Source: Octopus bimaculoides (taxonomy: Eukaryota). From it: 54,972 nucleotides of DNA. The stretch is taken from the NCBI RefSeq assembly GCF_001194135.2, contig NC_069001.1, forward strand, positions 8,118,971 through 8,173,942, given 5' to 3'. The translations under genes were made by a program, and so were the position numbers. Positions 1,500 through 53,280 of this stretch are shown here, in pieces. Position 1 is the stretch's first letter, and every line of letters starts with the position of its first letter. The notes under the pieces are model-generated. The model did not search any database. It was not told the origin of the DNA and saw only the letters and a list, made by a program, of their open reading frames with translations.

Positions 1500-2739
1500 C
1501 TTAGTCAATTTTTGTTTTCTGCTGCAAATGATTTACTACATGCAACAGTGATATGACTTCTATCCTGTATGAATGTGTTTGTGAATAAATAAGTGATGAT
1601 GCTGAGAAAATGATTTACAACAGACATCATACTGATGTGGCTTCTACCCTGTATGAACACGCTTGTGCTTAGTTAAGTTACTGTTTTGAGAGAATGATTT
1701 ACCACAGATATCACAGTGATATGGTTTTTCACCAGTGTGTGTGTACATGTGTTTAGTTAAACAGTATCTGCGAGAGAATGAGTTACCACAGAGATCACAG
1801 TGATATGGCTTCTCTCCAGTATGACTTCGTTTATGAGCAGCAAAGTTATTTTCGCTAGAGAATGATTTATCACATATATTACAGTGATATGGCTTCTCTC
1901 CTGTATGAATACATTGGTACATCCTTATGTCATTATTATCACTTTGCGAGGATGATTTAAAACAGATACTACAGTGGAATAGTGTCTGTTCTGTATGAAT
2001 GTGCTTGTCACTAATTAGGTTAGGTTTTTGAGAGAATGATTTACCACAGATATGACAGTGATATGGTTTTTCTCCTGTATGAATACGTTTGTGTTTTTTC
2101 AAATGATCATTTCTAGAGAATAATGTACCACAAATATCACAGTCATATGACTTCTCTTCTTGTATGAATGCGCTTGTGAGTAGTAACATTAGTTTCTTGA
2201 GAGAATGATTTACCACAGACATGACAGTGAAATGGTTTTTGCCCTGTATGAATATGCACATGTTTTGCTAAGTGATCATTTCTAGAGAATAATTTACCAC
2301 AGGCATCACAATGATATGGTTTCTCACCAGTATGAATGCGTTTATGTTTGGTTAAATGAGCAGTTTGAGAAAATGATGTGCCACAGATATCACAATGATA
2401 TGGTTTATCTCCAGTATGAATGTGTTTATGTTTGGTTAAATGATTATGTTGAGAAAACGAGTTACCGCAGATGTCACAGTGATATGGTCTCTCTCCTGTA
2501 TGAATACGTTTATGACAAATTAAGTTATTTTCATTTGAGAAAGATGCACCACAGATTTCACAGTGATGCAGTTTTTCTCTTGTATGAATGCATTTATGCT
2601 TCGTTAAGCTACGGATTTTAGAGAAAGATTTGCTACAAATATTACAGCAATATGGTTTTCCTCCTATATTAGTGTGCATGAGTTCAGGTAAACAATCAAT
2701 TTCAAAGAAGAATTTCCGACAAATTTCGCATGATAACAA
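1500..2739 (-). pseudogene. ZNF-1: disrupted C2H2 zinc-finger array (about 10 intact fingers plus degenerate ones)
   Basis: Overlapping ORFs 2143-2739 and 1644-2261 are joined by a +1 insertion in a linker at ~2157-2160. The conserved MEN start is absent, two internal fingers are broken, and TAG occurs in linkers at 1644-1646 and 1560-1562. The acceptor AG is retained at 3195-3196. Confidence 0.8.
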
Positions 2740-3403
2740 TCATGCTCAGACAGTGCTCTTAGTGCTCCACTGGTAAAGGTGCCATCACGATTTCGAATTC
2801 ACTTGCCCCAGCAGGTCTTTGCTGTAATTATTCTTTCACAATATATTGATATTTTCTTTCTTTCTATTTTTACATCTCATTTGTAAAAACAATACTTACT
2901 GCTGTATTTCTATCAACAGTGATATCTGTCAAGTGCTGAAGATATTGCAAACTCTTTTTTTACATCTATCCACGTTTAAGTAGAGTGCAAAATAAGCTTG
3001 CACACATTCAGATAGTCACGTAAACAAAGTTTGTAAATATTATCACTCAGAGGTGGTATTCCACATTACTTGTTCCACAGATTTATGTAACCAAATTTAC
3101 ACAACTGTTGTATATAATATATTCCTTAGTCTTTAATAGGCGATGGTGCTTCTGAAGTAAAAAATCTTTTTTAATGCCAATGTCATCTGATATTCTGAAA
3201 TAATAAAGAAATATTATTAGTTATATAAGATACTTAAAAATTTAAGATTCAGCAATTATTTTACTATAATTTTAGTAGTGTACATGATACTGATAAACTA
3301 CAGATACTAGCTTTTATCTGTGTACTTTATTTAAAAATTATATTCTACAACCTTATGTGAAGTTTACACATTTGCACACTTGAGCTATACACTTTCAGAT
3401 ACT

Positions 3404-3620
3404 CTTTACTCTTGACTTGTTTCAGTCATTTGACTGTGGCCATGTTGGGGCACCGCCTTTAGTCGAGCAAATCAACCCCAGGACTTATTCTTTGTAAGCC
3501 CAGTACTTATTCTATCGGTCTCTTTTGTCGAACCGCTAAGTTACTGGGACATAAACACACCAGCATCGGTTGTCAAGCAATGCTAGGGGGACAAACACAA
3601 ACACACACACACACATATAT
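3404..3620 (-). mobile_element. SINE family A, 3' half
   Basis: Near-identical to 773-1000 and ends at the (CA)/(TA) microsatellite. Confidence 0.85.
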
Positions 3621-3898
3621 GCCTAACGTTAAAGCCTAAAATTGTCTAACCCTAGGACATGAATACATTATACAGACATTAAGTTTATTTAAAAGAAATT
3701 CATAATTTTCATGGCTTTCTCATTATTATTATTATGGTAGGAAATCAATTATCTACCATGGGGGGGGGATGCAAAAAGAAGTCTTTCCAAAATTCCCCAC
3801 AAATGGTTTCAATACAGTTTTAACAGAAAGGTTTGGAAGAATTAGACGGAAGTTCTCCAGTAATTTTCTTTAATGTAAATAAATGTATTTATTTTCAG

Positions 3899-4065
3899 CC
3901 AGGTACTTATTGCATCGGTATCTTTTGCGAACTGCTTATTTACGTGGACAGACACAAACCACCACCGGTTATGAAGCGGTCGTAGGATACAGACAGACAC
4001 GACGAGCTTCTTTCAGTTACCGTCTGTCCAGTCAAAAGGTTTGGTCGGCCTCGGGCTATAATGTA
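3899..4065 (-). mobile_element. Old, degenerate SINE family A fragment
   Basis: Diverged match to the family A middle (gtacttatt...cttctttcagtt...ggtcggcctcgggctata). Confidence 0.55.
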
Positions 4066-4149
4066 TGAGCGGTCATAAAAGACCGACAGGTCAAAAACGA
4101 AAGCATACAACGATAACGGTCATAGAAATAGTCTTTACTGAGTACTTAC

Positions 4150-4260: not shown

Positions 4261-4315
4261 TATTTTCCTTAATTGTCCTTTTGAGAAGGGAAATTACTCT
4301 TACAAGGCTTACACT

Positions 4316-7838: not shown

Positions 7839-9281
7839 TCAGTTATATGGCTTCTTCCCTGTATGAATAAATTTGTGTCTAGTTAAGCAGTATCTTTGAG
7901 AGAATGATTTGCCACATGTATCACAGTGGTATGGTTTGTCTCCTGTATGATTATGTTTGTGGTTAGTTAAGGTAATTACATGAGAGAATGATTTACCACA
8001 GATATCACAATGATATGGCTTCTCTCCAGTATGAACACGTTTGTGTTTAGTTAAATGATCATTTCGATAGAACGATTTACCACAGATATCACAACCATAT
8101 CGTTTCTCTCCTGTATGAATATATCTGTGGTTAGTTAATATAGATTTTAAAGAGAATGATTTACCACAGATATCACAGTCATGTGGTTTTTCTCCTGTAT
8201 GTATTAGTTTGTGACTGGCCAAGTAAGACCTTTGAGAGACTGATTTACCACAGATATTGCACTGATATGGTTTTTCTCCTGTATGAATATGTTTGTGACT
8301 AGTTAAGTCAACATTTCGAAAGAATGATTTACCACAGATATCACAGCGATATGGTTTCTCTCCTGTATGAATACGTTTGTGAGAAGTTAAGTAGCTATTT
8401 CGCGAGAATGATTTACTACAGATATCACAGTGATATGGTCTTTCTCCGGTATGAATACGTTTATGTGTAGTCAAGGTGCTTCCATGAGTGAATGATTTAC
8501 CACAGATATCACAGTGATGCTGTTTTTCTCCTGTATGAATAAATTTGTGGGTAGTTAAGTGACCCGATGCAGAGAATGATTTTCCACAGATATCACAGTG
8601 ATACGGCTTCTCTCCAGTATGAATACGCTTATGAGTAATTAACTGACTTTTTTGAGAGCATGATTTACCACAGACATCACAGCAATATGGTTTTTCACCT
8701 GTATGAATGCGCCTGTGAGCAGTTAACTCACTTGTTTGAGAGAAAGATTTACCACAGATATCACAACAATATGGTTTTTCTCCAGTATGAATATGTTTGT
8801 GAGTAGTTAAATATCCATTTCGAGAGAATGATTTACCACAGATATCACAGCGGTAAGGCTTTTCTCCTGTGTGAATGCGTTTGTGTGATGTTAACGTACT
8901 TCCATGAGAGAATGATTTACCACAGATATCACAGTGATGTGGTTTTTCTCCTGTATGTATACGTTTGTGAGTAGTTAAAGTACTACTTTTGCAGAATGAT
9001 TCACCACAGATGTCACAGTGATATGGTTTTTTTCCTGTATGTATATTTTCATGACTAGTTAGGTTACCTCTTAGAGAAAATGAATTACCACAGATATCAC
9101 AATGATATGGTTTTCCTCTTGTATGAATACGTTTGTGAGTAGTAAGCTTACTTTTTTGAGAGAATGATTTTTTACAGATATCACAGTGGTATAATTTTCT
9201 TCCTATCTCATCAGGAAAATTAATCATTTTAGACTGTGTGTTACATTTAAACTGGTTCTTGGACAATTCGTTTTCCATCAT
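7839..9281 (-). CDS. ZNF-2: C2H2 zinc-finger protein, 16 tandem fingers, 480 aa
   Basis: Intact ORF of a 32-aa N-terminal peptide plus 16 x 28 aa with TGEKP-type linkers. Acceptor ttatttcag at 9505-9506. Confidence 0.95.
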
Positions 9282-10756
9282 TTTTCTTCCCTCATCACAA
9301 TATACAGATAGATATTCTTCTTCTTCTTGTTTTCATATTGCCTTTCTAGTAAACATTTCTACATCATATTCCCATCAGTTGTGATCTTTGCTGACATCTG
9401 AAGTTGCTGCTAACTAATTTATAAATGTTTTGTGTATAATAGCTTTCTTCAGTCTTAAATAGATGATATATATATATTACTTTATACCAATGTTGTTTGA
9501 TATTCTGAAATAAAGAAATAGTATAAGATATAGGGGGTACTTATGTAAAAATTCAATAGTGGAAATTTTATTACACTTCTATATTAACAATCTCCCAACA
9601 GAAACATTTATCTGAATGACTGAAATTCACTTTTTAATTTATTAAAATACCATCATATAACCTTGTGTGAAATCTACATATTTGCAGATGACAGCCTTTC
9701 AGAGTGTGTAACATTATATAAGTTAAACTATAAAATAGTGGACAATTAAATTCTTCTCTATCCAGGAACTTCATTCATTGTGTAGCTTTGTCTAGACATC
9801 ATGTGATGGCTATTAATGAGCATCATTGCCACACAAGCAATAACAGTAATTAGCAACAGACATTTGATTGTGTGTATGAATGTATGTATATATAACATGC
9901 TAGTAATAGCAATTACATTACCCATCATTACAAACTGGGGGCGGGGCTAACCCATAGAAATATTGAAAAACAAACACTTTAAATAAGACCTGAACCTGAA
10001 AAATAAAAGACGGGATGTCTATGGTTGGAATGCCTTTGGTCATAGGTGTGTTGGATCGGAGCTGACCTGAGCTAAAAAAAACTATAACAATTAGTAACAG
10101 CCTAACTGAGGACTTCTCTGTGCAGTCACTTGATTCGTCAGAAATAATAACCAAATCATTACTCAAACATCTTTAATCAAAGACATTTGCTTGATTAAGG
10201 CTGACGTGAGGCTAATTGCCAACAGATTTTTAACCATCTTTCCAGGTAGAGACCAGTAATCTATTTCTCACAGATCAAGTTAACCACACAGAGGGCTTCT
10301 CTTTAAATGAATCAAGCCCGTCACTCATTATAATAGTTTAGTTCCAGTTCAGCTCTTTTTATTTATTAATTCATGACAAAAATCAATTTCTTTTCCATTA
10401 GCATACAAAACTACATCAGTACACCAAATTTGAAAACAACTGGAACAAAATTAAGAAACAGAAAACTGTCACAACAACAGAAAAGATCCCAGCTCTATTC
10501 CAGTAGACCAGTGACTGAAAGCATTCCAGGCTTGACCATCCCATCTATTATTTTTTTAGAGAATCATAGTATGTTGACATGTATCAGTTTCTAGTTAACA
10601 AGGAAATTTATATAACGACGAACAATGTAGCTGTTATTTCTAGCATGTTGGGTCACAACAGTTGACGTACAGAAGTCTTTCGCTCGTTGTTGCTCTCATC
10701 TACAGCCTTATGACGAAAGGCATTCATTCACGGTCACTTTTATTTTTCGGGTAAAG

Positions 10757-11106: not shown

Positions 11107-11585
11107 AGGTGCGCTTTGCGAGAAAAATGGTAGATGAGGGAAATTTTGATATAATAAAAACATGAGACATTCCAGGATAGAACACATTGAAAGACAAGCA
11201 CTTAAAAAGACATGTTCGTGCGTCCGCATAATTACATATGCAGAAACGAACCGGACGTGTTATTTTCCAATTTCATTCTTTGGAAAATCAATAATAATAA
11301 TAATAATAAGTCAATAAAAAAGACAAAAATAAAGAAATAGGGAGCTGTCTTCTGGAATAAAGAGAAGGGACTTTCCTGATTGTGTGAAAGTGTATAAACA
11401 TCAATGTCAACGAAGAATTTTCTCTTAGGTTTGTCGTTTCTGTAAAATTACTGCGGCGTCCTTGAAGATGGTTATTCGGTGATCTTTCGATACTCGTTAT
11501 TTCGGACTCGTATCGAAAGATAGCCGGTTATTCTATCATTTAGACACATTACCTGACAGATATATTGAAATCTTCGTAAACTTAC

Positions 11586-11700
11586 CGACCCAAGATGTAA
11601 ACAGCGATTTACCTTTTCGTGCCTTGAGTTTTTCGAAATGACGTAAATTATTTCAAAGTTAGATTCTATATCCTTAGCCGCAGTTTCGATATACCGGGTA
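11586..11700 (-). promoter_or_regulatory. Putative non-coding exon 1 / TSS region of ZNF-2
   Basis: Donor GTAAGT at 11585-11580. Paralog-conserved motifs gatgtaaaca and agccgcagtttcga (11676-11689). Confidence 0.6.
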
Positions 11701-14704: not shown

Positions 14705-15649
14705 TCAATTATATGGCTTCTCTCCTGTATGTACATACTTGTGTCTCGTTAAGTTACCAGTGAGAGAGAATGATTTGCCACAGATATCACAGAGATATGG
14801 CTTCTCTCCTGTATGAGTACGTTTGTGTTTAATTACATGATGATTTTGAGTGAATGATTTGCCACAGATATCACAGTGATATGGCTTCTCTCCTGTATGA
14901 ATGCGAATGTGAGTAATTAATTCACTATTTCGAGAGAATGCTTTATCACAGATATCACAGTCATATGGTTTCTCTCCTGTGTGAATGCGTACATGAGAAG
15001 TTAATTCACCATTTCTAGAAAATGATTTACCACAAATATCACATTCATACGGCTTCTCTCGTGTATGAATATGTCTGTGTTTAGTTAAGTCACAATTTCC
15101 AGAGAAAGATTTACCACAGATATCACAACAATAAGGTTTTTCCCCTGTATGAATGCGTATATGAGCAGTTAAGTTACTACTTTCAGAAAACGATTTATCA
15201 CAGATATCACAGTGATATGGCCTTTCTCCAGTATGAATTCGTTTGTGTTTAGTTAAATTACAATTTTGTGAGAATGATTTACCACAGATATTACAGTGAT
15301 ATGGCTTCTCTCCTGTATGAATGCGTTTGTGTTTAGTTAAGACCCACATCTGAGAGAAGGATTTATCACAAATATTACAGTAATATGGTTTCTCTCCTGT
15401 ATGGATCCGTTTGTGTTTAGTCAAGACCCCACTTTGAGTGAAGGATTTACCACAAATGTCACAGTTATATGGCTTTTCTCCTGTGTGAATACGTTTGTGA
15501 GTAGTTAGGTTACCATTTTGAGAAAATGACTTTTTACAGATATCACAGTGGTATAATGTTTTTCCTATCTCTTTGAATGTCTCATCAGGAAAATCAATCG
15601 TTTTAGATTCTGTTTTATACTTCACCTTCTCATTTATTTCATTTGCCAT
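14705..15649 (-). CDS. ZNF-3: C2H2 zinc-finger protein, 10 fingers, 314 aa
   Basis: Intact ORF of 34 aa plus 10 x 28 aa. Acceptor ttatttcag at 16008-16009. Confidence 0.95.
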   Translation of the reverse strand: MANEINEKVKYKTESKTIDFPDETFKEIGKTLYHCDICKKSFSQNGNLTTHKRIHTGEKPYNCDICGKSFTQSGVLTKHKRIHTGEKPYYCNICDKSFSQMWVLTKHKRIHTGEKPYHCNICGKSFSQNCNLTKHKRIHTGERPYHCDICDKSFSESSNLTAHIRIHTGEKPYCCDICGKSFSGNCDLTKHRHIHTREKPYECDICGKSFSRNGELTSHVRIHTGEKPYDCDICDKAFSRNSELITHIRIHTGEKPYHCDICGKSFTQNHHVIKHKRTHTGEKPYLCDICGKSFSLTGNLTRHKYVHTGEKPYN

Positions 15650-16714
15650 AATTTTTCTTCTCTCACCACATTATACAGATGATATTCCCTTTTACTTATT
15701 TTATATTTTTTGTTCCTAAAAAATATTCTTACGGCTATGTTTCCATTGTCTATGATCCTTGTTCATACCTGAAGGTGTAAGTTTGTCCAAAGGATGTAAA
15801 ATCATCTTGTATATATTCCAGACAATGAAGCTGAAACACCTTGTAAATAATCTCACTTGAGAGGAAAATATTTCACAGTAACTCTACTCCTGATTTATAT
15901 AAGCAGGGTTATATCTCTTCTGCATAATCTCCCTTTTGTGTTCCAAAGATGATAAATATTGATAATGCATCTCAAAAGTGATTTTTATGCCAATGACATT
16001 TGAGATTCTGAAATAAAAGTGAAATAATAAAGATATAGAGAATACTTAAAAAGTAGGAATTTAATAGTAGAAACTTTACTACATTTCTATACTGACAGAC
16101 TTGAGAAAAACTGTTACAACTGAATTTTAGTTTTCTTAATTTACTAAAATTATATCAATCAAACTTGTGTGATATTTACGTATTCACAGACAGCATCTTC
16201 AGATTGAGCAAGATTATAAATGTCAAATAACAGAATGGTACATAATAATATTCTTTCCTCGAGATTTGTTATTATCCAGTCGTTGGCTGGCTCTAAAACA
16301 ATCCTCACTGAGCAGATAAACAATCAACGGTATTCCAGCCATGATCAACCATACTCCTTTCAGGCACTACACACCTCGGATTATATTATTCAATATACGC
16401 CTCGAATTCATGATGAGAGAGTCAAGTTTCACGGAAACTTGGTTGTATTTTCTAGCAAGTCTGAGCTCCCCGAGTAGTTTATTATTACTTTAAAATTAAC
16501 GTTTATGAAATGTTGTAGCTTCCTTATGTGCAGCTACTTAAGGGACACGTAGAGGTAAGGTGTGAAAGTGAAATATACTTCCCTAAAGAGGAAAATATTA
16601 TAAGTAAAAGGAGAGTATTGTTTGTAAAGAATTAAAAGTTTTGAATGGTACAACAATGCACTATAATACAAAAAAATGGACTATATACCTGTTGTAATTT
16701 AATTATCTATAGTC

Positions 16715-16750: not shown

Positions 16751-17244
16751 TACTTAGATTGAGTCGTTGCAAACAGATTGCATGGAATGAAGTAAGCAAT
16801 ATAGACCTTCGAGTAATCATCGTACTTTGGATCTTTTCTGTTTAATTCACTGAGCCATTTTAAAAACAAAATCTACACAGATGTAGTTTTGATTGCTAAT
16901 TACGAAAAACCTCGTTCTTTTCATACCTATAGGTTTGATCAAATAAGTACCAGCCTAGTAATGATGTGACCTCGTGTCAATGTTTGAAATTTCGTTTATA
17001 TACTCAGGTAAAATTCGACCAAATGTTTACAGTCGACACAGCCTTTCGATCCATGGTTTTCAAAAATAACAGATCATAATTCCAGTTTGATAGTAGATCC
17101 TGTATGTAAACATCAACATGACGAGATACCTTTCGCCTAATGTTATTTACATGTTTCACTTTCGTTTAATTACTCTATCCTCGAACAGAAACATAATTCT
17201 GATTTACACAATTACAACCTTAAAGCAAATCTTCATCAACTTAC

Positions 17245-17460
17245 CGAGTTGAGATGTAAACAGTGAACTAGAACTAGTTTAGTGTTTTACCTTTTTACCA
17301 AACCATCTCCTCGCTAAATTGAGATTTTCAGAGGTTTTAACAACTTTACACTTTGATATCAAGGTTTAAAGAATTTCAGATTTATTTCTTGTCAGGATGA
17401 AACAGTAAAGCTGGTATTATATCTTCAGCCTCAGTTTCGCTGACGAAATAATATGTGTGT
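17245..17460 (-). promoter_or_regulatory. Putative non-coding exon 1 / TSS region of ZNF-3
   Basis: Donor GTAAGT at 17244-17239. Motifs gatgtaaaca and agcctcagtttcg (17427-17439). Confidence 0.6.
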
Positions 17461-17611
17461 ATATGTAAAATACTAATTATCTCAAACAGTGCCCCACGAC
17501 TGTTTTTTTTTGCATCAATTTCATGAAATACAATTTTTTCACGGACCAGGAGATCACGCAGAAAATAAAACACAATAACGTGCAAAATAGGCATATCTAA
17601 ACAAATGGGCT

Positions 17612-19889: not shown

Positions 19890-21090
19890 AACATTAGCTT
19901 TGTTTTCTGTGGTAAATCTAATTTTTGCTTCCCTCCTTGCTAAATATACTAGGTATCTAACTTCTCTTTCAGTTGTTTGATATTATTCCTTGCTCCTCTC
20001 TTTCTTCCATTCTTTCCCAAGCCTGTCTTCACTTACTATAGCTTTGTCTATTATACAACGCCAACGCTATATCAGCTTCTGCTTGACCATCTATAGATTT
20101 GAGATTTGGTCAACGGCACACATCAGGATGTCATGTAAAAATTCCCAGCAGGTCTTTTTCTCCTTCTCATACACATTACTTATACTTCTCTGAATCGAGA
20201 TCTAGTTCTTACTCTAAATAAATCACTAGAATATGTTGAGTGATGTTCTTCATTGTAGAAGGTTTTAGTATCCACAAACATCCATCTAATTTTATGGTAA
20301 GGTGATCGGGGAATTGGCCAGTTTCCTCAAGTTAGTATTGCAAAACTTTAAGTCAACTGAACCATAGAACCCCAAGAAACTTAATCACTCTTGATTATAT
20401 TTCTATAGTCATAACCTCCTTGGTCATTGGGAGAGCCATCATGGTGTTGCTAAACATTTCCATTAAAGTTGCAAAGCATGATTATGTGGTTATTGTCATC
20501 TATTATTGTGCTGTCTATAAGAAAGCCTTCTAGGAAGGTTTTTTTCCTCTTGTTCATCTATCAGTTCTGACTGTGGTGCATATGTGAAAATTACTATTGC
20601 TTATGACTGGTCTAAACCCAATAACTCTGAATGCATCAATTACTTTATCTACCTGTCTCTCTCTACCAACAATATATCTATGCTACAGTGATGTTACCCA
20701 GCCAGAATAATATGCATCTGTGTTTCTTCCTAACAAGAAGATTGACTGAAATTCATCTCCACTTTACCTCTTGTGTCTAGCATACATCAACTCACCACAG
20801 CACAAGAATCTCTACAATATTTCCAGACTGACTCTTAATTGTGCCAAAACTGATGATGTCAACCCCTAAAAATTTGCTTCTGAAAAGAAGAAGGGAGATT
20901 CTGAGGGTGCTTGAGTTGTTTCATGTCTATTTTCTATCTCTGAAAGGAAGAGAGATGGTGCAACCTTTTGATAAGAGTTGAGGAAATTTCACACATTGCC
21001 AGATGTTCACACCAAGCCACCATCCACTTTGCATTTATACACAACCAACTAAAACATAAAGAATCATGCTTCAAAAAAAAAATTATATAA
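19890..21090 (-). mobile_element. Degenerate RTE-type LINE 5' part (AP endonuclease region)
   Basis: Broken-frame motifs GTIKSQSGNIVEIL, VDVC*TQEVKWR, a YAPQS-like block, a GDFNGHV-like block and a CNTNFRK-like block occur in RTE order. Confidence 0.75.
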
Positions 21091-21650
21091 AACTTAGCAA
21101 TAGCAGAGAATGATCTATCACAAATATTACATTGATATGGTTTCTCACCAGTATGAATGCGTTTGTGTTCGGTTACATCACCACTTTGAGAGAATGATTT
21201 GCCACAGATATCACAGGGATATGGTTTCTCTCCTGTATGAATTCGTATGTGTCTAGTTAAGTCGCTTGTTTTAGCAAATGATTTACTACAAATATTACAA
21301 AGATAAGGCTTTTCTCCAGTATGAATGCGTTTATGTATAGTCAATTGGCTACTTACAGACAAGGATTTACCACAGATATCACAGTGATATGGCTTCTCTC
21401 CTGTATGAATACGTTTGTGTTTGGTTAAGTCGCTATTTCCAGAGAATGATTTACCACAAAAATCACAGTGATATCGTTTTTCACCTGTATGAATACGTTT
21501 GTGAGAAGTGAGGTTACCTTTTTGAGAGAATGACTTTTTACAGATTATACAGTGGTATAATGTTTTTCCTATACCTTTCAGTCTCTCATCAGAAAAATCA
21601 ATCTTTTTAGACTCTACTTTAACCTCATTCTCATCTAAATCATTTTCCAT
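20934..21650 (-). CDS. ZNF-4: truncated C2H2 protein, 5 complete fingers plus a LINE-derived tail
   Basis: The paralog-equivalent ATG (MENDL) is at 21650; the track start at 21716 is a TTG. Finger 6 breaks at ~21092 and the frame runs ~50 codons into non-ZF sequence. Acceptor at 22011-22012. Confidence 0.8.
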
Positions 21651-22774
21651 AATTTTTCTTTTCTCACCATAATATTTGACTACACTCGTTTCTGTTTTGT
21701 CTTTTATTCTTAACAAATATTTCTGTTGCTATATATTCCCATGTACTGTTATAAATTTGATGAATTATCATAAATTATAAGTTAAATGGAGAATACTAAA
21801 TCCTTTTGTACACATTCCAGACAATGAAATAGTGAAATTTTGCTATTAATTTCAGTTCATATGAAATATTTCACGGTAATTCTATGAGATTTATATAAAC
21901 AGGGTTATATCTGTTCTGTATAATATTTTCCTTTCGTTTCTGGAAGACATAAATATTATTGATGACGCACGTGATGTTGAAACTCTTTCATGCCAATGTC
22001 ATGGGATATTCTGAAACATGAGAGAAACAACACAAGATGTAGGCAATACTTGAAAAGAAGAGATTCAATAGAGGAAATTCTACAATTTTATAATGAGAAA
22101 ATATAGATGTAACCTTCAACTGAACAATCGAATTTCAGTTTTTAATCATTAAATTACATTATACAACCTTTAGTGGAGCTCATAATTTGCAGATTACAAA
22201 TAATCGTTGAAATTGTTTGAAATTCTGTTAAAAGACACAACAGTGGATACTAAATTTCTTCTCTTTTCAAAAACGTCATTTGTCACTGCTCTGATGCTGT
22301 TCTTGTACTTTAGCCCAATCTTGACTGAGTGGAACTACAACCAACGTCATTCTAGCCAAGACCATTTCTTCCATCTGTCAGACAGTGTATATCTATGAAT
22401 ATATTATTCTATATATATCTCCCTTTTCAAAACGGCAAAGCATAGATTAAAGGGAATATGGCAGCTATTTCTAGCAGATAAACAACTACATAGGTGGTTT
22501 GCTAGTGATTAGTTCTATGACAGCCCCGACTGAGCAAACCTATGATCAAAAGCTGGTTGTTTTTCAAAGGTACTACGAATATTATGACATCAAACAAAAA
22601 GAAACGTTGATGAATAAAGAAAAGACAAGTGAATGAAAAAGCATTAACAAAAAAAGTCTACAAATGGCAGTTGAATTGATAGAAAAATGCCTTCATCTTA
22701 TATAACCTTACAATTTCTTTACATGTAATCATTGTAGGCAGAAGTAATGCTAAAGGTATACCTGTCTGGTAAGA

Positions 22775-34017: not shown

Positions 34018-35011
34018 ACATATTTAATGAAACTATTTGACACAAACTAGTTTTCCGAATATGAACTGAGAGAACCATCAGTTCTTGTATGGATAATAAT
34101 CTAACCATTTTGAATTTTAAAAAAAAAATCATTCTCGCTCCCATTGCAACATTCCTTCATTTTTTTTTTTTTTCCTTTTCCAAATTTTGTAGTTTTGACG
34201 TAATGTAAATGTTTAAATTGCGAATATACAAAACCTGATCATGAATCATTAACAAAGAAGACTTAAAATATTCAGATCGATAATATGAATTAAGGTAAGA
34301 AAAATATATTCATACAATAAGTCGATGACGATGTGAAGGACGTTTTAGCTGTTGCAGCGGACGGAACATTTAATCACAATAACATACACTTTAGACACAT
34401 CAAGTTGGTTTCGATTACTTATAGCAGCATATTGTCCCGTGGATGAAGTCACGATCACTACATTCTTCTGTTTGCTTTCCAAAAGTAGCCCTCGGAAGTA
34501 TCTCTCATTTGTTCAAAATTGTTACAGCTATATTTCTGTTTACACGCTCTTTCATGTAACCCCACTTTGTATCGAGCTCGATTTTTTCGTAAATCGTCAG
34601 CGGTTTAATACCGAAACGATTATTATCAAAATGTTTTAGAGGCATTTCGTCTGTATTTATATTTCTGAATTGAAATTCCGCTAACGTGGACCTTTCGGGG
34701 TCGATGAAATAAGTACCAATTAAGCACTGAGATCGATGCAATCAACAAGCACCTTTCCTCAAAATTTTAGGCCTTGTACCGATAGTAGAAAAGATTATCA
34801 TCATAATTTATTTATATTATTTTCCATAAACTCCTTAATTACTGAGTATAATTGTGTAAGAAAAACGTAGGACATGAACATGTTTCCCAATGTTGTTTAG
34901 AGTTTTCACATCTAAGTTTATATAATTAGTACACGCCCCGAAGAAGCAGACATTTCAATTACTTACACATGCACAATAATACAACGTTAATGCAAATCTT
35001 GGCTAACTTAC

Positions 35012-35220
35012 CATATTTAGATTGAAACAATGAATGCCTGTGTTCTGTTTTCACATAAAACAACGAAAAAAGATTAAAATAGAGTTTTTTTTTTTCAGGT
35101 TCCTCCTTTACGTGAAATGAAAGATAAATAAGACTATTGCAAGTCTTCCATATTCAGCGGTAATTTCGTAGTAAAGCAATAAAGATGACTAATGTTATTT
35201 AGCCGCAGTTTCGACACGAA
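35012..35220 (-). promoter_or_regulatory. Putative non-coding exon 1 / TSS region of ZNF-5
   Basis: Donor GTAAGT at 35011-35006. Motif agccgcagtttcga at 35201-35214. Confidence 0.55.
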
Positions 35221-35989
35221 ATAACTGCGTTAATATATTAGCTTATTTCTAGCACACACACATTAATGTTTGTTTTTATGTTAAGTCATATGTAAAAAGA
35301 AACACTATTAAACCTTGGGAGAGGCATTATGCCGGTAAGAAACACACGCACTGGTTCGGTCCTTTATTTATAAACAGTATTTAGTTTTTTTTTGTTTTGT
35401 TTTGTTAAATCATTTCATTGCACTCTTGCAATCTCTTCAGTAACCCGTCTCTCCACAAGAATCTTCAACACCAAATAAAAAGAAACAATTTGACATTAAA
35501 GTGAAGGATTACTCAACACTTTTAGTACAGTACTCGTTTAATTAATAACTTTTACAAAGGAAAGGTTAACAGCGACGTCAGTTTCGGCTTCTTTTATCGT
35601 GCGTGTGTGAATGTGCATATGTAGGAATATCTTTTATCTTTTACCGTTTCATTCATTTGATTACGGCCATGCTGGTGCACCATCTTGAAGAGTTTTAGCC
35701 GAACAAATCGACCTCAGACTTATTCTATCGGTCTCTTTGCTGAGCCAAAAACATATGCCCACGACTGTCCTCTTATATAGTTTTAAGACAAAATGCTTGT
35801 CTTTTTTTTGTCAGGCAATAGTTTGGACAGTTTGACAAGCTTTGATGTCTACAGATTGCATCGAGCTCCTATATCTGCCTTGGCATGGTTTTTTTATGGT
35901 TGGATGCCCTTCCTAATGTCAACCACTTTATAGCATAGACATGGGTGCTTTTTTTGATGTCATCTACATTATTGAGGTTGCCATGTAAC

Positions 35990-39017: not shown

Positions 39018-40109
39018 TTACTCTCTTGTATGAATATGTCTGTGTTTAGTTAAGTAACTAATTTTAGAAAAGGATTTACCACAGATACTACAATGATATG
39101 GTTTTTCTGAACTGTGAATGTACCTATGTTTATTTAAGACACTTCCATCAGAGAATGATTTGCCACAGATATCACAGTCATATGGTTTCTCTCCTGTATG
39201 AATACGCTTGTGAACAGTCAATGAACTACTCTGAGAAAAAGATTTGCCACAGATATCACAGTGATATGGTTTTTCTCCAGTATGAACACGCTTGTGAGTA
39301 ATTAAAGTACTTCCATGAGAGAATGATTTTCCACAGACATCACAGTGATATGGTTGTTCACCTGTATGAATACGCTTGTGTTTATAAAAGTTACCAGTTT
39401 CAGAGAAAGACTTACCACAGATATCACAGTTATATGGCTTTTCTCCAGTATGAATGCGCTTGTGTGTAGTTAAGCTACTACTTACGGAGAATGATTTTCC
39501 ACAAATATCACAGTCATATGGTTTTTCTCCTGTATGAATACGTTTGTGAACAGTTAGATTACCTTTTTGAGTGAATAATATACCACATATATCACAGTAA
39601 TAAGGTCTCTCTCCTGTGTGAATACGTTTGTGAGTAGTTAAGTGAGTTGTTTCGGAAAATGATTTACCACAAGTATCACAATGATATGGCTTCTCTCCTG
39701 TATGAATTCTTTTGTGAGTAGTCAAGTCATTACTTTGAGAAAATGATTTACCACAGATACCACAATGATATGGTTTTTCTCCTGTATGAATACGCATGTG
39801 AGTAGTTAGGTTACCCTTTTGAGTGAATGATATACCACAAATATCACAATCATATGGCTTCTTTCCTATGTGAATATCCCTGTGTCGAGAAAAGCAACTT
39901 TTTTGAGAGAAAGATTTACCACATATATCACAGTAATATGGCTTGACTCCTGAATGAATATGTTTGTGAGTAGTTAGGTTACTTTTCTGATTGAATGACT
40001 TTTTACAGATATCACAGTGGTATGATGTTTTTCCTATCTTACTGGAGAAGTTCATCTTCTTATACTGTCTTTTACAATTTACTTTCTTTTCAGATAATTG
40101 ATTTTCCAT
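39018..40109 (-). CDS. ZNF-6: C2H2 zinc-finger protein, 12 fingers, 363 aa
   Basis: Intact ORF of 31 aa plus 12 fingers, ending at a TAA in the linker. Acceptor ctatttcag at 40469-40470. Confidence 0.95.
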   Translation of the reverse strand: MENQLSEKKVNCKRQYKKMNFSSKIGKTSYHCDICKKSFNQKSNLTTHKHIHSGVKPYYCDICGKSFSQKSCFSRHRDIHIGKKPYDCDICGISFTQKGNLTTHMRIHTGEKPYHCGICGKSFSQSNDLTTHKRIHTGEKPYHCDTCGKSFSETTHLTTHKRIHTGERPYYCDICGILFTQKGNLTVHKRIHTGEKPYDCDICGKSFSVSSSLTTHKRIHTGEKPYNCDICGKSFSETGNFYKHKRIHTGEQPYHCDVCGKSFSHGSTLITHKRVHTGEKPYHCDICGKSFSQSSSLTVHKRIHTGEKPYDCDICGKSFSDGSVLNKHRYIHSSEKPYHCSICGKSFSKISYLTKHRHIHTRE

Positions 40110-41059
40110 AATTCTTTTTAACTTACAACATGAAGATATTCTCTTCTCTTTGATGTACGTTGTCTTCTCGACAAATATCTCTTCTGCTACACTCCCATCA
40201 GATGTTCCGTTTGTGATATCCGAAAAGAGTGCAAACTCATTTGCAATTTAAGTTTAGTTAAATTGCAAAATTGCCTTGTATATATTTTAGCAAGCTTTAT
40301 GGAGAAATGTTGCTATTAATCTCAACTTGTTGGAAATATTTCGCAGTAATTCCACCATACAGTATTATACCTATGGTGTATAACATCTTCCTTTAGTCTT
40401 TAAACAATGGTAAATAGCACTGATGCAGCTGAAGTAAAAATTCTTTCATGTCAATATCATCCATTATTCTGAAATAGAAAAACAGAGTAAGAGATTGAGA
40501 ATACTTCATACTTACAAAGCAGCAATTCAACACAAGAAATTTTATTAACTCTACATATTACAAATTACAGGAGTATTTTAAACCTTCTTCATTTTCTTAT
40601 TTGGTTTTCAAGATTCTTGATGTAAATTCCCGCGTTGGGACAAATTTTATGTAAAAAGTCGGATCGTGTGAATATGCCGAAACTCCTTTCCCCCACCCTC
40701 CACCCTCTCGGAAAAATTCTTTCCCATAAATCCCTATATATCTGAATCCACAGCATCTAAGAGGTATTTGTTGAAAATTTCGTTAAGAAATATCCATATT
40801 CTGGAAATTATGNNNNNNNNNNNNNNNNNNNNNNNNNNNNNNNNNNNNNNNNNNNNNNNNNNNNNNNNNNNNNNNNNNNNNNNNNNNNNNNNNNNNNNNN
40901 NNNNNNNNNNNNNNNNNNNNNNNNNNNNNNNNNNNNNNNNNNNNNNNNNNNNNNNNNNNNNNNNNNNNNNNNNNNNNNNNNNNNNNNNNNNNNNNNNNNN
41001 NNNNNNNNNNNNNNNNNNNNNNNNNNNNNNNNNNNNNNNNNNNNNNNNNNNNNNNNNNN

Positions 41060-45667: not shown

Positions 45668-46377
45668 TCAACAATATTTTACTGCAGATCTCATAGTATA
45701 TATCTCTCCTGTATGAATACATTTGTGATTTCGTAAGGGTCCTCTATGAGAGAATGATTTACCACACGCATGACAGTGATATGGCTTCTCTCCTGTATGA
45801 ATGCGTTTGTGAGTAGTTAAATTTCCATTTTGAGAGAATGATTTACCACAAATATCACAGTAATATGGCTTCTCTCTTGTATGGACACGTTTGTGTAGAG
45901 TTAGGGTATTACTTTCAGAGAATGATTTCCCACAGACATCACAATGGTAAGGTGCTTCTCCTGTATGAAGTCGTTTGTGTTTAATTAAGTTAGCATTGCG
46001 AGAGAATGATTTACCACAGATATCACAATGAAATTGTTTTTCTCCTGTATGAATATGTTTATGCACATTTAAGTATGTTTTCTGANNNNNNNNNNNNNNN
46101 NNNNNNNNNNNNNNNNNNNNNNNNNNNNNNNNNNNNNNNNNNNNNNNNNNNNNNNNNNNNNNNNNNNNNNNNNNNNNNNNNNNNNACTATTGGAGAAGCA
46201 TATACCACAGACATCACAGTGATATGGCTTCTCTCCTGTGTGAATGCTTTTGTGTACAGTTAAGTTAAATCTTACAGAGAATGATTTACCACAGATATCA
46301 CAGAAATACAGTTTTCCTCTTCTATGGAAGCATTTCTTCCTAGATAAGTTACTACTGCCTAAAGATGATTTATACAT
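45668..46377 (-). CDS. ZNF-7: C2H2 protein spanning an assembly gap (5 complete fingers and 2 partial fingers visible)
   Basis: ORFs 46069-46377 and 45668-46066 flank a 100-N gap (46086-46185), so the frame change is probably an artefact. Paralog of ZNF-8. Acceptor ttattgcag at 46883-46884. Confidence 0.75.
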
Positions 46378-47699
46378 TTCAATGTGTCTGCGTGACTTTG
46401 AGAGTGATATGATGTTGTGTGTGTTGCTTGCAGTATCTCGTGCGAAAAACCAAACTTTTTATATTATATTTTGTATTTAAACTGCTTACACAGAATTAAT
46501 TTTCCACTATACTTCTCTCTTCCAAATAAAGTTTTCTCCATTAATTTTGTGTTTTATTTCCAACAAATATTTCTCCTACTATATTTCCATCAACAGTTAT
46601 CGGTTAGGCATCTGAAGATGCTGTAAACGCTTTTACAAACGTGTCCAAGTTTCATTACATTCCAAATTCATCTTGTCCATATTCCAGAGAGCAAAGTAGA
46701 AAAGTGCCACAAATAATTTCACTCAGATGAAATATTTCAGAGAAACTTTTACCACAGATTTCTACAAAACGGGTTCTATCTATTCGGTGTAGCAGCTTCT
46801 TTTATTCTTTTTAAAAGATGATAAATATTGATGATGCATGTGAAGTAAAAAGCCTCTTTAATTACCAATGTCATCTGACTTGCTGCAATAAATAAATAAG
46901 AACAATAGCATAAGATATCAAGAATACTTAAAAAGCAGATATTTAACAGTTTCAGTTTTACATTTTTATAAAGATAATCTGTAGATATAAACCTTTACTA
47001 GAACAACTGAACTTTACCTTATAATTTTTTCATTAAAATTACAGAACAGCCACTACACCTTCAGATTATATAACATTATAATAATGAATTACATAAATTC
47101 CTCTCTCCACAGAAAAGTTATTCACTTTGCCTAAAACACAGATAGTGCTGAGCAGATCTATCATCAAAATCATTCCAAGTACGGCCAACACATTATTTTA
47201 TATATCAAGGATTATATTATTCAAAGTGTCCTTTGTTTTTTTTAAGATGATAGGGTATGATCTGAGGGAACTTGAAGTGACTACAATGGGTCCAAACAGA
47301 ATATATCTCTCTACAAATTTCTCAAGTCATACAGATTTTAACTAATTTTCTCATTACAAAAGAAAATATCTTTGCAAGATTTCAGTCCAGACTTGGTCAG
47401 ATGGCAATATAGTGAATGTGAAATGAATTACATCTCATTGATGGATTTGATTCTGTAGAAACCATAGTGGTTATCACAAACAAGACTTACTGCAAGAAAT
47501 AAGGGAGCTTCTTATTTACAACAGGTCCCATAACTTTTGAGATTATTCAAGTCATATTTATAGCACAGAAGGGTCAGAGAGGCTGGCAAATAAGATATTA
47601 TTGGCATGGGAAATATTGAAGTTCTTTCAGTTGAGATTAGATTACAGTGAAGTGGGAAAGTCTGATGGGTTCTCTCCTAATATTCTTCTAATTATATCC

Positions 47700-49800: not shown

Positions 49801-51225
49801 TCACGGTGATAATGGTTCTATTTCTGTATGAGTGCGTTTGTGAATATTTAAGCAATGATTCTGAGAGAATGATTTACCACAGATATGACAGCAATATGGC
49901 TTTTCTCCTGTATGAACACGTTTATGCACAGTTAAGTTTCCATTTTGAGAGAATGATTTACCACAAACATCACAGCGATATGGTTTCTCTCTTGTATGGA
50001 CACGTTTGTGTACAGTTAAATTGTTACTTTCAGTGAATGATTTACCACAGACATCACAATGATAAGGTGTTTCTCCTGTATGTAGGCGTTTGTGGTTAAT
50101 TAAGATACCATTGTAAGAGAATGATTTACCACAGATGTCACAGCTATAGGGTCTCTCTCCTGTATGCAGACGTTTATGTATAGCTAAGGTACCACTTTCA
50201 GCGAATGATCTACCACAAATATCACAATGATATGGCTTTTCCCCTGAATGAATGCGTTTGTGAACAGTTACTTTAGCTTTCCGAAGGAACGATTTACCAC
50301 AGATATTACAGTGGTATGGTTTTTCTCCTGTATGAACACGTTTATGCACATTTAAGTATCTTTTCTGAGCAAATGATTTACCACAAACATCACAGTAATA
50401 TGGCTCCATTCTAATATGTATGTCTTTGTGTTTTGTTAAGTTAGAATTTACTGAGAACGATTTACCACAGATATCACAATGATATGGTTTCTCTCCTGTA
50501 TGAGTATATTTGTGAATAGTTAAGTAACTATTCTGAGAGAATGATTTACCACACACATTACAATGATATGGTTTCTCTCCTGTATGAGTGCGTTTGTGAA
50601 CAGGTAAATAACCATTTACAGAGAATGATTTACCACAGATATCACAATGATATGGTTTCTCTCCTGTATGAGTGCGTTTATGAGAAGTTAAGTAACTACT
50701 TCGAGCGAATGATGTACCACAGATATCACAATGATATGGTTTCTCTCCTGAATGAGTGCGTTTGTGAATAGTTAAATAGCCAGTTAGAGAAAAGGATTTA
50801 CCACAGATATCACAAGGATATGGTTTCTCTCCTGTATGAGTGTATTTGTGAGTAGTTAAAGAAACTTTTTGAGAGAATGACTGACCACAGATATCACAAT
50901 GATATGGTTTCTCTCCTGTATGAGTGCGTTTGTGAGTAATTAAGTTACTGCTTACAGAGAATGATTTACCACAGACATCACAGTGATAGGGCATCTCTCC
51001 TGTATGGAGATGTTTGTGTCTAATTAAGTTACTATTTCTGGAGAAGGATATGCCACATATATCGCAATGATATGGCTTTCCTCCTGTGTGAATGCGTTTG
51101 TGTTCAGTTAAGGTGACACCTACAGAGAATGATTTACCACAGATATTGCAGAGACAAGGTTTTTCTCTTCTATGAAAGCGTTTCTTCCTAGGCAAGTTAC
51201 TACTGCCTAAAAATGATTTATACAT
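49801..51225 (-). CDS. ZNF-8: C2H2 zinc-finger protein, 16 fingers, 474 aa, starting at an internal ATG
   Basis: Intact ORF of 25 aa plus 16 fingers. Acceptor ttatttcag at 51941-51942. Confidence 0.9.
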
Positions 51226-51565
51226 TTCTCTTGTATGAATGCGTTTGTGTGCATTTAATGCAATTGCTCAAGAGAATGATTTACCACAGATGTCGAAATG
51301 CTATGACCTTTCTGCTCTATGAATATGTTTGTGTTTAGTTAAGTTACTGCTTCGAAGAAACAACTTACCACAAATATTTGACTGAAATGGTGTTTTTCTC
51401 CTGTATGAATAAATTTGCAAGTAGTTAGGCTACTCTTTGAAGAAAATAGCCTTCAAGGTTAATATGAGGTTGTATGTGTTTCTTACAGTATCTCATGCAA
51501 AAAGCCAAGCTTTTTATATTATATTTTGTCTTTAAACTGTTTACACAGAATTAATTTTCCACTAT
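51226..51565 (-). pseudogene. Dead ancestral N-terminus and three dead fingers upstream of the ZNF-8 ORF
   Basis: GTG GAA AAT TAA replaces ATG GAA AAT GAA. The fingers carry a frameshift, lost Cys residues, and TAG and TGA codons. Confidence 0.8.
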
Positions 51566-52444
51566 ACTTCTTCTCTCTTCCCAATAAAGTTTTCTTCATT
51601 AATTTTGTATTTCATTTCCAACAGATATTTCTCCTGCTATATTTCCATCAACTGTTAACAGTGAGGCATCTGAGGATGCTGCAAACTCCTTTACAAACTT
51701 GTCCAAGTTTCATTAGACTACAAATTCATCTTCTCCACATTCCAGAGAGCAAAGTAAAAAAGTGTCACAAATAATCTCACTCAGATGAAATATTTCAGAG
51801 AAACTTATACCACAGATTTCTACAAAACGGGTTCTATCTGTTCGGTGTAGCAGCTTCTTTTACTCTTTTTAAAAGATGATAAATATTGATGATGCATGTG
51901 AAGTAAAAAGACTCTTTAATTACCAATGCCATCTGACGTTCTGAAATAAAAAAAAAACAACATATCAAGAATACTTAAAAAGCAGATATTTAACAGTTTC
52001 AATTTTACATATCTATATAGATAATCTATATAGAACTGAACTTTACCATATAATTTTTCCATTAAAATTATATCATACAACGTCTATAAAGTTTTAGACA
52101 ACAGCCACTACACCTTCAGGTTGTATAACATTATAGTAATAAATTACAGAATAATGAACAATAAAATTCCTCTCTCCACAGAAATGTTATTTCACACTGC
52201 TTTGAATCCCAGACAGGACAGAGCAGATTTATGATTAAAATTATTCCAAATCAGGCCAACAGTGTCCTTTGTTTTTTAAAATGATAGGGTATGATCTGAG
52301 TGAACTTGAAGTTAATATAATGGGTCCAATGGAATAGATCTCTGCATAAATTTCTCAAGACATATAGATTTTAACCAATTTCCCATTACAAAAGGAAATA
52401 TCTTAAGAAGTTTCCACGTTAGAGATGGACTATATGTAATCTGA

Positions 52445-52855
52445 ACCTTTCCCCCCCCCCCTTATTTATTAATTTTTTTTTACGGAATCCCACGTTTTAG
52501 GCTATGGAGATTCCGATTCTGAAAAAAAAATTTTAAAGGGGGGGGGGTATACCCAGATTACATATACTCCATCTCCACCGGAANNNNNNNNNNNNNNNNN
52601 NNNNNNNNNNNNNNNNNNNNNNNNNNNNNNNNNNNNNNNNNNNNNNNNNNNNNNNNNNNNNNNNNNNNNNNNNNNNNNNNNNNNNNNNNNNNNNNNNNNN
52701 NNGGGGGGGTCGAAATTTTGAAATTGAGATTTTTGAAAATTTTTTTCCAGAATCGGATTCTCCATGGTCTGAAACATAGGATTCCGTAAAAAAAAAAAAA
52801 TTTTAAAGGGGGGGGGGTATACCCAGATTACATATACTCCATCTCCACCGGAAAG
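52445..52855. repeat. Palindromic MITE-like element broken by a gap
   Basis: ttacggaatccc...gagattccgattctg is inverted as cagaatcggattctcc...ggattccgtaa. A ~55-bp block is duplicated on both sides of the gap. Confidence 0.6.
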
Positions 52856-53069
52856 GGAAATACTGAAGTTCTCTCAGATTAGATTATAGTGAAGCGGTAA
52901 AGTCTGATGTTGTATTCAATACTAGCCAGAAAAATATAAAACGAAATAACATGGGCTTTCCACTAATATTTTAAAGATTTGTTTCTAGTAAGCGCTCACT
53001 TCTGTATAATCGAAGAGAAACATAATTCTATTTACACATTTACAGTTTCAAAGAAAATCGTCAACTTAC

Positions 53070-53280
53070 CGTTTTGAGGTGTAAACAATGAATCGTTGTG
53101 TTGTGCTTCCTTACTAAACGATGAAAGAAATGATTTCGTTGTTACGGTGCTGTTTCCAAAGATTTTAGCATCATTATTCTAAAGCAAAAACTGCGACTGA
53201 AATGGAACACACAATTCTTTTGTCTGAATAAGCAACAAAGCTGGCTCTCTGTTTATAGCCGCAGTTTCTGCACGAAATAC
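53070..53280 (-). promoter_or_regulatory. Putative non-coding exon 1 / TSS region of ZNF-8
   Basis: Donor GTAAGT at 53069-53064. Motifs ggtgtaaaca and agccgcagtttc (53257-53268). The intron start is homologous to those of ZNF-3 and ZNF-4. Confidence 0.6.

Follow-up and report, generated by a model that had tools for sequence, protein, structure and literature searches.

A probable birth-and-death cluster of eight C2H2 zinc-finger units in Octopus bimaculoides, with a shared gene cassette and variable finger arrays

We analysed a stretch of 54,972 nucleotides (nt) of Octopus bimaculoides chromosome CM046621.1 (GCA_001194135.2), hereafter the window, whose position 1 lies at about base 8,118,971 and which has a G+C content of 34.7% and six runs of N. 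It holds eight paralogous C2H2 poly-zinc-finger units, U1 to U8, all on the minus strand, and is very probably a birth-and-death tandem cluster of eight Krueppel-type C2H2 genes that forms part of the octopus zinc-finger (ZNF) expansion. Such a cluster would have grown by head-to-tail duplication of a whole unit of about 6 kilobases (kb), leaving all copies on one strand. Each unit would be a two-exon gene, with a short non-coding exon 1 behind a promoter-proximal motif, a consensus donor, an intron of 1.1-3.3 kb and an exon 2 that combines the 5' untranslated region (UTR) with the entire coding sequence: a leader, a conserved first finger, a variable run of fingers, and a conserved last finger with its stop. 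The 3' UTR would be made of decayed fingers, and arrays would lengthen or shorten as internal 84-nt finger units are gained or lost. Most likely, the products of the intact copies are regulators that bind DNA sequence-specifically; the copies would be transcribed by way of exon 1, and their products may act on genes, transposable elements (TEs) or both.

The cluster itself is apparent from several lines of evidence. All 88 matches to C-X2-C-X12-H-X3-4-H in a pattern scan of the whole window are on the minus strand. Independently of that scan, Tandem Repeats Finder reports 84-nt arrays at all eight sites, with 13.3, 16.4, 10.0, about 5, 11.4, 12.6, 4.3 and 16.7 copies in order. When nine open reading frames (ORFs) were compared with Pfam, PF00096 and PF13465 matched every one (E values 1e-20 to 1e-129), and the matches listed are all to C2H2-type families. 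The fingers are of the Krueppel type, being tandem C-X2-C-X12-H-X3-H units with a 28-residue (84-nt) period and conserved TGEKP(Y/F) linkers; the octopus genome and the tandem, same-strand arrangement of the paralogues place them in the octopus/coleoid expansion. From acceptor to acceptor the intervals are 6310, 6503, 6003, 9668, 8790, 6414 and 5058 nt, all nominal, as several span assembly gaps of unknown length. A first-pass annotation, made from the sequence without database searches, had described an eight-unit cluster built from one repeated gene cassette and spaced at 5.1-9.7 kb, mostly about 6 kb. The acceptors, the fingers and the homology of the cassettes bear out the first part of this description, and the nominal range of 5058-9668 nt the second. 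What has been duplicated is the whole unit of about 6 kb, its 3' flank included.

The eight conserved acceptors listed in that annotation are all real. They are minus-strand 3' splice sites, each position in Table 1 being that of the last intron base, and take the form of a pyrimidine tract followed by ttatttcag/AATATCAGATGACATTGGCAT (here and below a slash marks an exon boundary). A profile built from them recovers those eight minus-strand sites and no others in the window (E values 1e-27 to 1e-34), and the 28-nt acceptor consensus with at most three mismatches finds 4 sites against 0.00 expected (100 shuffles). The stretch from acceptor to ATG is a UTR of 225-360 nt containing in-frame stops, and the leader ATG follows it in U2-U6. 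Because in-frame stops stand between the acceptor and the canonical ATG, no upstream exon can add protein sequence or a domain. An AAGTAT box found about 35 nt upstream of each acceptor was considered as a donor and rejected, since it would leave too short an intron; the box more probably belongs to the branch-site region.

The first ~21 nt of exon 2 (AATATCAGATGACATTGGCAT) are far better conserved than the remaining 5' UTR, in all units and also in Octopus vulgaris. They hold the ATG of a tiny upstream ORF (uORF), encoding MTLA, MSLA or MILT and then a stop, in U3, U4, U6 and two of the three units of an O. vulgaris locus (L005, described below); in the other units this mini-uORF is longer or absent. 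The conserved exon start could be a splicing enhancer or a shared means of translational control.

A sensitive comparison of upstream sequences found a collinear conserved block 1.1-3.3 kb upstream of the acceptor in five of the eight units (U2, U3, U4, U5 and U8). At its 5' edge is ATTTCGTnnCGAAACTGyGGC, an imperfect palindrome (TTTCG..CGAAA) and a candidate shared promoter element, and about 100-200 nt past this motif the block ends in TGTTTACATC...CG/GTAAGT, a consensus 5' splice site. The sequence CGAAACTG occurs five times in the window, always on the minus strand, and four of the five occurrences are within upstream blocks, while the U8 block carries AGAAACTG instead. The block is evidently constrained, because the remaining intron cannot be aligned between units. 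We infer that it comprises a promoter and a non-coding exon 1, and the units look like separate two-exon genes.

These blocks bear on a quite different arrangement, one complex transcription unit in which a shared upstream promoter or exon is spliced to any of the eight exons, in a reversed protocadherin- or UGT1-like logic. Eight same-strand exons that each open with a strong conserved acceptor would suit such a scheme, as would an annotated O. vulgaris gene model, P0145, in which one unit is spliced to the acceptor of another farther downstream. However, in five units a conserved block with its own consensus donor stands upstream at a regular distance. In-frame stops in the same exon come before each canonical ATG, so that nothing coding would be shared, and the duplicated module extends over the entire unit and its 3' flank. 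A single unit with alternative terminal exons was rejected after the unit-specific, donor-bearing blocks had been found, and we consider the arrangement very improbable.

The same cassette is also present in O. vulgaris. In 56 kb of sequence from that species, the acceptor profile built from the window finds five sites, four at E values of about 1e-18 to 1e-20 and one at 4e-8, and all five precede a zinc-finger array. Four of them lie 150-260 nt upstream of an ATGGAR start, three of these, in L005, with a matching leader peptide. L005 (OX597834.1) consists of three same-strand units with acceptors 5942 and 6460 nt apart, an exon start nearly identical to that of the window (AAATATCAGATGACATTGGCATGA), and arrays of 7, 8 and 18 fingers, the middle copy, between intact ones, being broken by stops and frameshifts. 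Two further units are found in a second locus, L004 (OX597841.1), which likewise has this acceptor and exon start together with a related leader. The cassette is thus a family-wide architecture older than the split of O. bimaculoides and O. vulgaris, and not peculiar to the window.

Some other features of the O. vulgaris loci deserve mention. In the 18-finger array of L005 (16461-18203), a four-finger block (RSHHLTT, QNSHLTT, QNGDLTT, QKGNLIT) is repeated with small changes, twice fully and a third time partly, which illustrates directly how arrays grow by multi-finger duplication. P0145 has exons in L004 at 10001-10138, 19572-19601 and 25598-25651, one of which begins exactly at the homologous acceptor and is spliced in from the neighbouring unit. 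The model exits unit A at a cryptic donor made from finger-1 helix codons (AAAG/GTAAC) and proceeds by a 30-nt exon to the conserved acceptor of the unit 15 kb downstream; the chimera is due to read-through splicing across adjacent units or else is an artefact of the annotation. At 4683-4827 (minus) in L004 there is an exon-1-like piece with donor TGTTTACATCTGGAAACA/GTAAGC, inverted, some 150 nt before the plus-strand acceptor at 4887, which is a local inversion or rearrangement within the cluster.

Within the arrays, the first finger and the last finger with its stop are fixed bookends, and the internal finger number varies from 5 to 16. U2, U3, U4 and U6 have a first finger of one type, of which U5 carries a variant. 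These five first fingers are each other's best matches; helix-codon identity is 0.83-0.89 among the first four units and 0.67-0.72 for U5. Non-first fingers lack positional orthology, their scaffold identity being 0.81 within units versus 0.80 between them. U2, U3 and U5 have in common a last finger with R at +6 and the terminal GEKPYN-stop. This ending appears to have arisen by a 1-2-nt deletion in a former further finger, and decayed fingers follow it as 3' UTR. According to the first-pass annotation the units share intron ends, a leader and mostly a first finger, and so possess a fixed chassis on which finger number and recognition helices vary. All of this agrees with what we find, with U5 as the variant in the first finger, and the chassis extends beyond the original list to the putative exon 1, the UTR and the last finger with its stop.

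The variation falls largely on the residues that contact DNA. Among 73 in-frame fingers, entropy is highest at positions -1, +2, +3 and +6 (2.4-3.3 bits); the Cys and His ligands have 0 bits, most other scaffold positions 0.2-1.3 bits, and the linker positions T, G, E, K and P 0.4-1.0 bits. Over all pairs, the ratio of nonsynonymous to synonymous divergence (dN/dS, or omega) is 0.16 for the scaffold and 1.01 for the contact residues, at a proportion of synonymous differences (pS) of about 0.5. As this all-against-all comparison is saturated, it was replaced by a split-codon nearest-neighbour design, in which neighbours are picked on half of the scaffold codons and dS is taken from the other half to avoid selection bias. 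The result is a contact omega of 1.22 (0.72-1.86 across splits) and a scaffold omega of 0.17, the overall range for the scaffold being 0.16-0.26. Expressed as nonsynonymous over synonymous proportions (pN/pS), with synonymous sites partly saturated, the contact residues give 1.0-1.4 in the window (1.4 for the closest pairs) and 0.8-1.2 in the younger L005. In U7 and U8, the youngest pair, contact pN is 0.41 versus an overall pS of 0.28, in four fingers only. The zinc-binding scaffold and the TGEKP linkers are under purifying selection and the four base-contacting residues are essentially free to change, and each copy would therefore read a different DNA sequence. The hypervariable reader of the first-pass annotation stands insofar as these are the most variable positions on a constrained scaffold, but change faster than neutral is not demonstrated, with contact omega at about 1.0-1.4. 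The annotation had named helix residues evolving no faster than neutral flanks as a finding that would count against it; our estimates, at about the synonymous rate, come close to such a finding but settle this neither way.

The units differ in condition, with U2, U3, U5 and U6 intact. U1 is dead: it lacks a start codon, its leader region carries an insertion, its frame shifts near 2143-2164 and two linkers contain stops. U4 is truncated: its sixth finger breaks off near 21100, beyond which unrelated sequence continues until the stop at 20934, and the sequence past the breakpoint, compared with the window, gave no relevant match. In U6 the stop comes earlier, with decayed fingers downstream of it. 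The canonical start of both U7 and U8 reads GTG GAA AAT TAA (46507 and 51562), and in U8 decayed fingers with stops precede the restart. The earlier picture of intact, truncated, frameshifted and restarted copies side by side is accurate for U1-U6 and U8; U7 has an assembly gap inside its array. The U7 frame is unbroken between ATG 46377 and the gap, and likewise between the gap and the stop at 45668. For the flanking parts to share one frame with their fingers in register, the gap would have to measure 77 + 84n nt; the nominal 100 nt would be out of frame. With the gap size unfixed and both edges open, U7 cannot be called truncated, and its 132-residue GTG-start ORF is a gap artefact.

Given such damage, we considered whether the locus might be mostly evolutionary debris from unequal crossing-over in a repeat-rich region, with few or no copy-specific functions and with helix variability that reflects relaxed constraint. 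The death of U1, the truncation of U4 and the loss of the canonical start in U7 and U8 would be expected under this explanation, as would a contact omega of about 1 and an omega of 0.62 for the leader. On the other hand, a scaffold omega of 0.16-0.26 at a synonymous divergence of 0.3-0.5 shows long-term purifying selection on foldable fingers, and four ORFs of 314-480 residues, together with the 474-residue ORF of U8, have stayed open in DNA of 35% G+C. The acceptor, exon start and exon-1 block are also conserved far above the intron, the first two of them across species. We therefore regard debris as an unlikely account of the whole.

The youngest pair, U7 and U8, shows mosaic divergence. Their 3' flanks, made up of decayed fingers and 3' UTR (45071-45667 and 49115-49800), are 94.8% identical, the last four coding fingers (45668-46066 and 49801-50142) 81.5%, and the 5' UTR with the intron end (46407-47372 and 51462-52404) 80.7%, a pattern suggestive of recent gene conversion in the 3' part, or else of an array that has changed unusually fast. 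In the 3' flank of U6 there is a 207-nt direct repeat (38091-38296 and 38486-38691) with 97.6% identity and a spacing of 395 nt.

The proteins of five units, U2-U6, open with a leader of about 30 residues, MENELxENxVKCKTQSK.I.FPDE, which has a pN/pS of 0.62 and about 73% nucleotide identity versus 58% for the adjacent UTR. From a shallow alignment, AlphaFold assigns its residues 1-22 a predicted local distance difference test score (pLDDT) below 50 and finger 1 a score above 90; the leader is weakly constrained and predicted to be disordered. Seven leaders searched alone against Pfam matched no family, and KRAB (PF01352), SCAN (PF02023), BTB and ZAD (PF07776) are absent among the Pfam matches listed for the nine ORFs (the best 25 where there were more) and the seven leaders. 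The first-pass annotation had called the cluster effector-less. No known effector domain is indeed recognised by Pfam, although the conserved leader could be a short effector motif like that of the FiNZ-ZNFs of cyprinid fish.

Outside the window the leader is also present in A0A0L8I9E2, another O. bimaculoides paralogue, and in proteins of O. vulgaris. A word-indexed search with a profile of leader and finger 1 saw it in O. vulgaris, the matches listed all being of at most 100 residues, and an exhaustive search of a representative set with the same profile was dominated by many-finger proteins, A0A0L8I9E2 being the sole leader-bearing match listed. In a homology search with the whole U3 protein, vertebrate and insect ZNFs prevail, with one octopus protein among the matches listed. 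One may speculate that the leader, in the form ME[ND]EL.E..VKCKTQ....FPDE, is a lineage-specific effector, a counterpart of KRAB or FiNZ that recruits a silencing or co-regulator complex; the family would then be an independent invention of a TE-tracking module plus array, with the upstream motif, exon start and mini-uORF serving as common expression control. We think this quite improbable.

Repeats are abundant between the units, where at least 24% of bases recur within the window. SINE-like (short interspersed element-like) repeats form families A (at least 5 copies), B (3 copies, 90-92% identity) and E; they could not be typed because Rfam and tRNA scans of the window were empty. There are also two families of miniature inverted-repeat transposable elements (MITEs), C and D, and the C copies, found in the 3' flanks of U3, U4 and U5, all face the same way, while their distance from the stop varies. 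Among candidate TE ORFs, Pfam recognises a Mos1-type HTH_48 at 24200-24282 (E = 1.2e-5) in the Tc1/mariner-type remnants between U4 and U5, with only weak matches to DDE_3 at 24520-24969 in the search of candidate long interspersed element (LINE) and other TE ORFs. That the units sit among TEs, as was proposed, is confirmed for SINE-like repeats, MITEs and the Mos1-type remnant, while the evidence for LINEs is weak.

This setting raises the question of whether the arrays form a TE-tracking repressor repertoire, convergent with the KRAB zinc-finger proteins (KRAB-ZFPs), in which they are selected for SINE, MITE and LINE families and silence them independently of KRAB. The contact residues are the most variable positions, birth and death has placed intact copies beside dead ones, and young repeats such as the family B copies are close by. 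TE consensus sequences show an enrichment of the motifs predicted for octopus ZNFs, and across animals the copy numbers of ZNFs and TEs are correlated (PMC10547256), and the same argument has been made for octopus specifically (PMC12988792). Positive selection is not demonstrated, however, by a contact omega of 1.0-1.2 (0.7-1.9 across splits) in the window and 0.8-1.2 in L005, no known repressor domain is among the Pfam matches listed, the leader appears weakly constrained (omega 0.62) and is predicted disordered, and published expression is chiefly neural and has also been read as a developmental role (PMC12513265). We regard TE tracking as a tentative and somewhat doubtful explanation.

Several observations weigh against our preferred reading of the locus as a birth-and-death cluster of two-exon regulatory genes. 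Three to four of the eight units are damaged. No exon 1 block was found for U1, U6 or U7 in the upstream-sequence comparison, and where exon 1 is assigned the evidence consists of conservation and a donor consensus. The inverted exon-1-like piece in L004 implies that the block can move independently of the unit. Exact-sequence look-ups for transcript contigs of U2, U3, U5 and U6 returned the genome assembly only, or nothing. Finally, a contact omega near 1 fits simple relaxation as well as diversification.

Coordinates are collected in Table 1. Of the six assembly gaps, that in U7 is the sole one touching coding sequence. The gap at 26146-26789 lies between inverted copies of SINE-like family B (25571-25882 and 26849-27169), and that at 52584-52702 between perfect 62-nt direct repeat copies (52522-52583 and 52792-52853) with a 116-nt inverted repeat alongside; local repeats probably caused both.

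Table 1. Features of the zinc-finger cluster; positions are those of the window except for the O. vulgaris row
Feature	Position	Strand	Details
U1 exon 2	1450..3194	minus	pseudogene, ~15 decayed fingers; acceptor G 3195
U2 exon 2	7839..9504	minus	ATG 9281, 480 residues, leader + 16 fingers, ends PYN-stop; acceptor G 9505
U3 exon 2	14705..16007	minus	ATG 15649, 314 residues, leader + 10 fingers, ends PYN-stop; acceptor G 16008
U4 exon 2	20934..22010	minus	ATG 21650, leader + 5 fingers; acceptor G 22011
U5 exon 2	30249..31678	minus	ATG 31364, 371 residues, leader, 11 fingers + degenerate last, ends PYN-stop; acceptor G 31679
U6 exon 2	39018..40468	minus	ATG 40109, 363 residues, leader + 12 fingers; acceptor G 40469
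U7 exon 2	45668..46882	minus	ORF restart ATG 46377, two fingers, gap, ~4.5 fingers, stop 45668; acceptor G 46883
U8 exon 2	49801..51940	minus	restart ATG 51225, 474 residues, 16 fingers; acceptor G 51941
Exon-2 first ~21 nt	3174-3194, 9484-9504, 15987-16007, 21990-22010, 31658-31678, 40448-40468, 46862-46882, 51920-51940	minus	AATATCAGATGACATTGGCAT
O. vulgaris L005 exon-2 starts	3891-3915, 9833-9857, 16293-16317		
U2 putative exon 1 block	11548..11696	minus	CGAAACTG motif 11688; donor G/GTAAGT, G at 11585; intron ~2.08 kb
U3 putative exon 1 block	17185..17464	minus	motif 17439; donor G 17244; intron 1237 nt
U4 putative exon 1 block	23254..23527	minus	motif 23502; donor CA/GTAAGA, G at 23313; intron 1303 nt
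U5 putative exon 1 block	34952..35238	minus	motif 35213; donor G 35011; intron 3333 nt
U8 putative exon 1 block	53014..53294	minus	motif 53269; donor G 53069; nominal intron 1129 nt including gap 52584-52702
Gap	46086-46185		inside U7 array
Gap	40813-41059		presumed U6 intron, 344 nt upstream of acceptor
Gap	52584-52702		putative U8 intron
Gaps	11868-11996, 23823-24191, 26146-26789		intergenic
MITE family C	14280-14510, 18577-18792, 28423-28653		~215 nt, 21-nt terminal inverted repeats (GGGGTGCTGAAAAGTTCCTGG)
MITE family D	278-484, 6320-6543, 29393-29604		~210 nt, TTAA-flanked, terminal inverted repeats of form TAACCCTTTAG
Tc1/mariner-type transposase remnants	24200..24969	minus	decayed; between U4 and U5

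The existence of a large clustered C2H2 expansion in octopus, which the first-pass annotation took as background, is well supported by the literature (PMC9068888, PMC12513265). The lineage-specific expansion in octopus and other coleoids goes back to Albertin et al. 2015, as cited in PMC12988792. For O. bimaculoides, 165 C2H2 genes are given as 9% of the total, which would amount to some 1,800 clustered C2H2 genes (PMC9068888). The timing of the octopus ZNF expansions and their mainly nervous-tissue expression have been described (PMC12513265), and for the octopus/coleoid expansion expression is reported as mainly in nervous and embryonic tissue (PMC12513265, PMC12988792). In silico, the contact residues of octopus ZNFs are the most variable by entropy, and predicted motifs show a genome-wide enrichment in TE consensus sequences (PMC10547256). 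TE targeting by KRAB-less octopus ZNFs is argued explicitly in one paper (PMC12988792) and called an open question in another (PMC12513265). The convergent, KRAB-independent, TE-targeting reading of these proteins is thus already published (PMC10547256, PMC12988792, PMC12513265).

Our units show no difference in kind from that expansion: the species is the same, and they are likewise Krueppel-type poly-ZNFs with TGEKP linkers, in same-strand tandem clusters, without KRAB and in repeat-rich surroundings. The octopus-expansion literature consulted does not describe the putative non-coding exon 1 with its conserved motif and donor, nor the conserved acceptor, exon start and leader or the fixed fingers at both ends of the array.

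Tetrapod KRAB-ZFP clusters, such as those of human chromosome 19, are alike in tandem birth and death, an array held in one large exon, finger duplication and loss within arrays, hypervariable contacts, pseudogenes among intact genes, and 3' UTRs of decayed fingers. They differ in that the octopus ORFs and leaders are without a PF01352 match and no coding exon lies upstream of the array exon, and in that a TRIM28-type pathway is not established in octopus. The FiNZ-ZNFs (PMC10547256) are also a large lineage-specific family in which a short (~28-30 residues), partly acidic N-terminus precedes the array. Neither that N-terminus nor the octopus leader is similar to known domains, and both families have been proposed to target TEs without KRAB. 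FiNZ is, however, on its own exon, whereas the octopus leader shares the array exon, and FiNZ is cyprinid-restricted and comes with knock-down evidence of TE repression and positive selection by PAML (PMC10547256), neither of which accompanies the octopus cluster. The octopus locus cannot be a FiNZ member, and its leader, for which homology to FiNZ would not be expected, may be called analogous in position and size.

Vertebrate ZNF-only proteins resemble the octopus copies as multi-finger DNA binders that act without KRAB or a recognisable partner domain. The insect ZAD-ZNFs are likewise multi-finger and KRAB-free, although PF07776 is absent from the octopus copies among the Pfam matches listed. 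The family-specific leader and gene architecture of octopus are shared with neither group.

Taken as a whole, the locus is an unexceptional part of an expansion already known; the observation in the first-pass annotation was accurate, and its interpretation was reasonable but is already in print, helix hypervariability being the one result of this analysis in its favour. The repeated cassette, the chassis, the variable array and the lack of a known effector domain hold, while helix change beyond the neutral rate is not demonstrated. If the arms-race reading were true, octopus would provide an invertebrate parallel to KRAB-ZFP/TE co-evolution, and would make it easier to tell "ZNFs for brains" apart from "ZNFs against transposons," which is a matter under debate (PMC12513265, PMC12988792). 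The window yields a clean gene model for one subfamily, consisting of exon 1 with its donor, acceptor, leader, fixed end fingers and a variable core. This model may be used for re-annotating the family and for picking young paralogues for selection tests, and the shared exon start and leader may serve for probes or for a family-wide knock-down, as for FiNZ.

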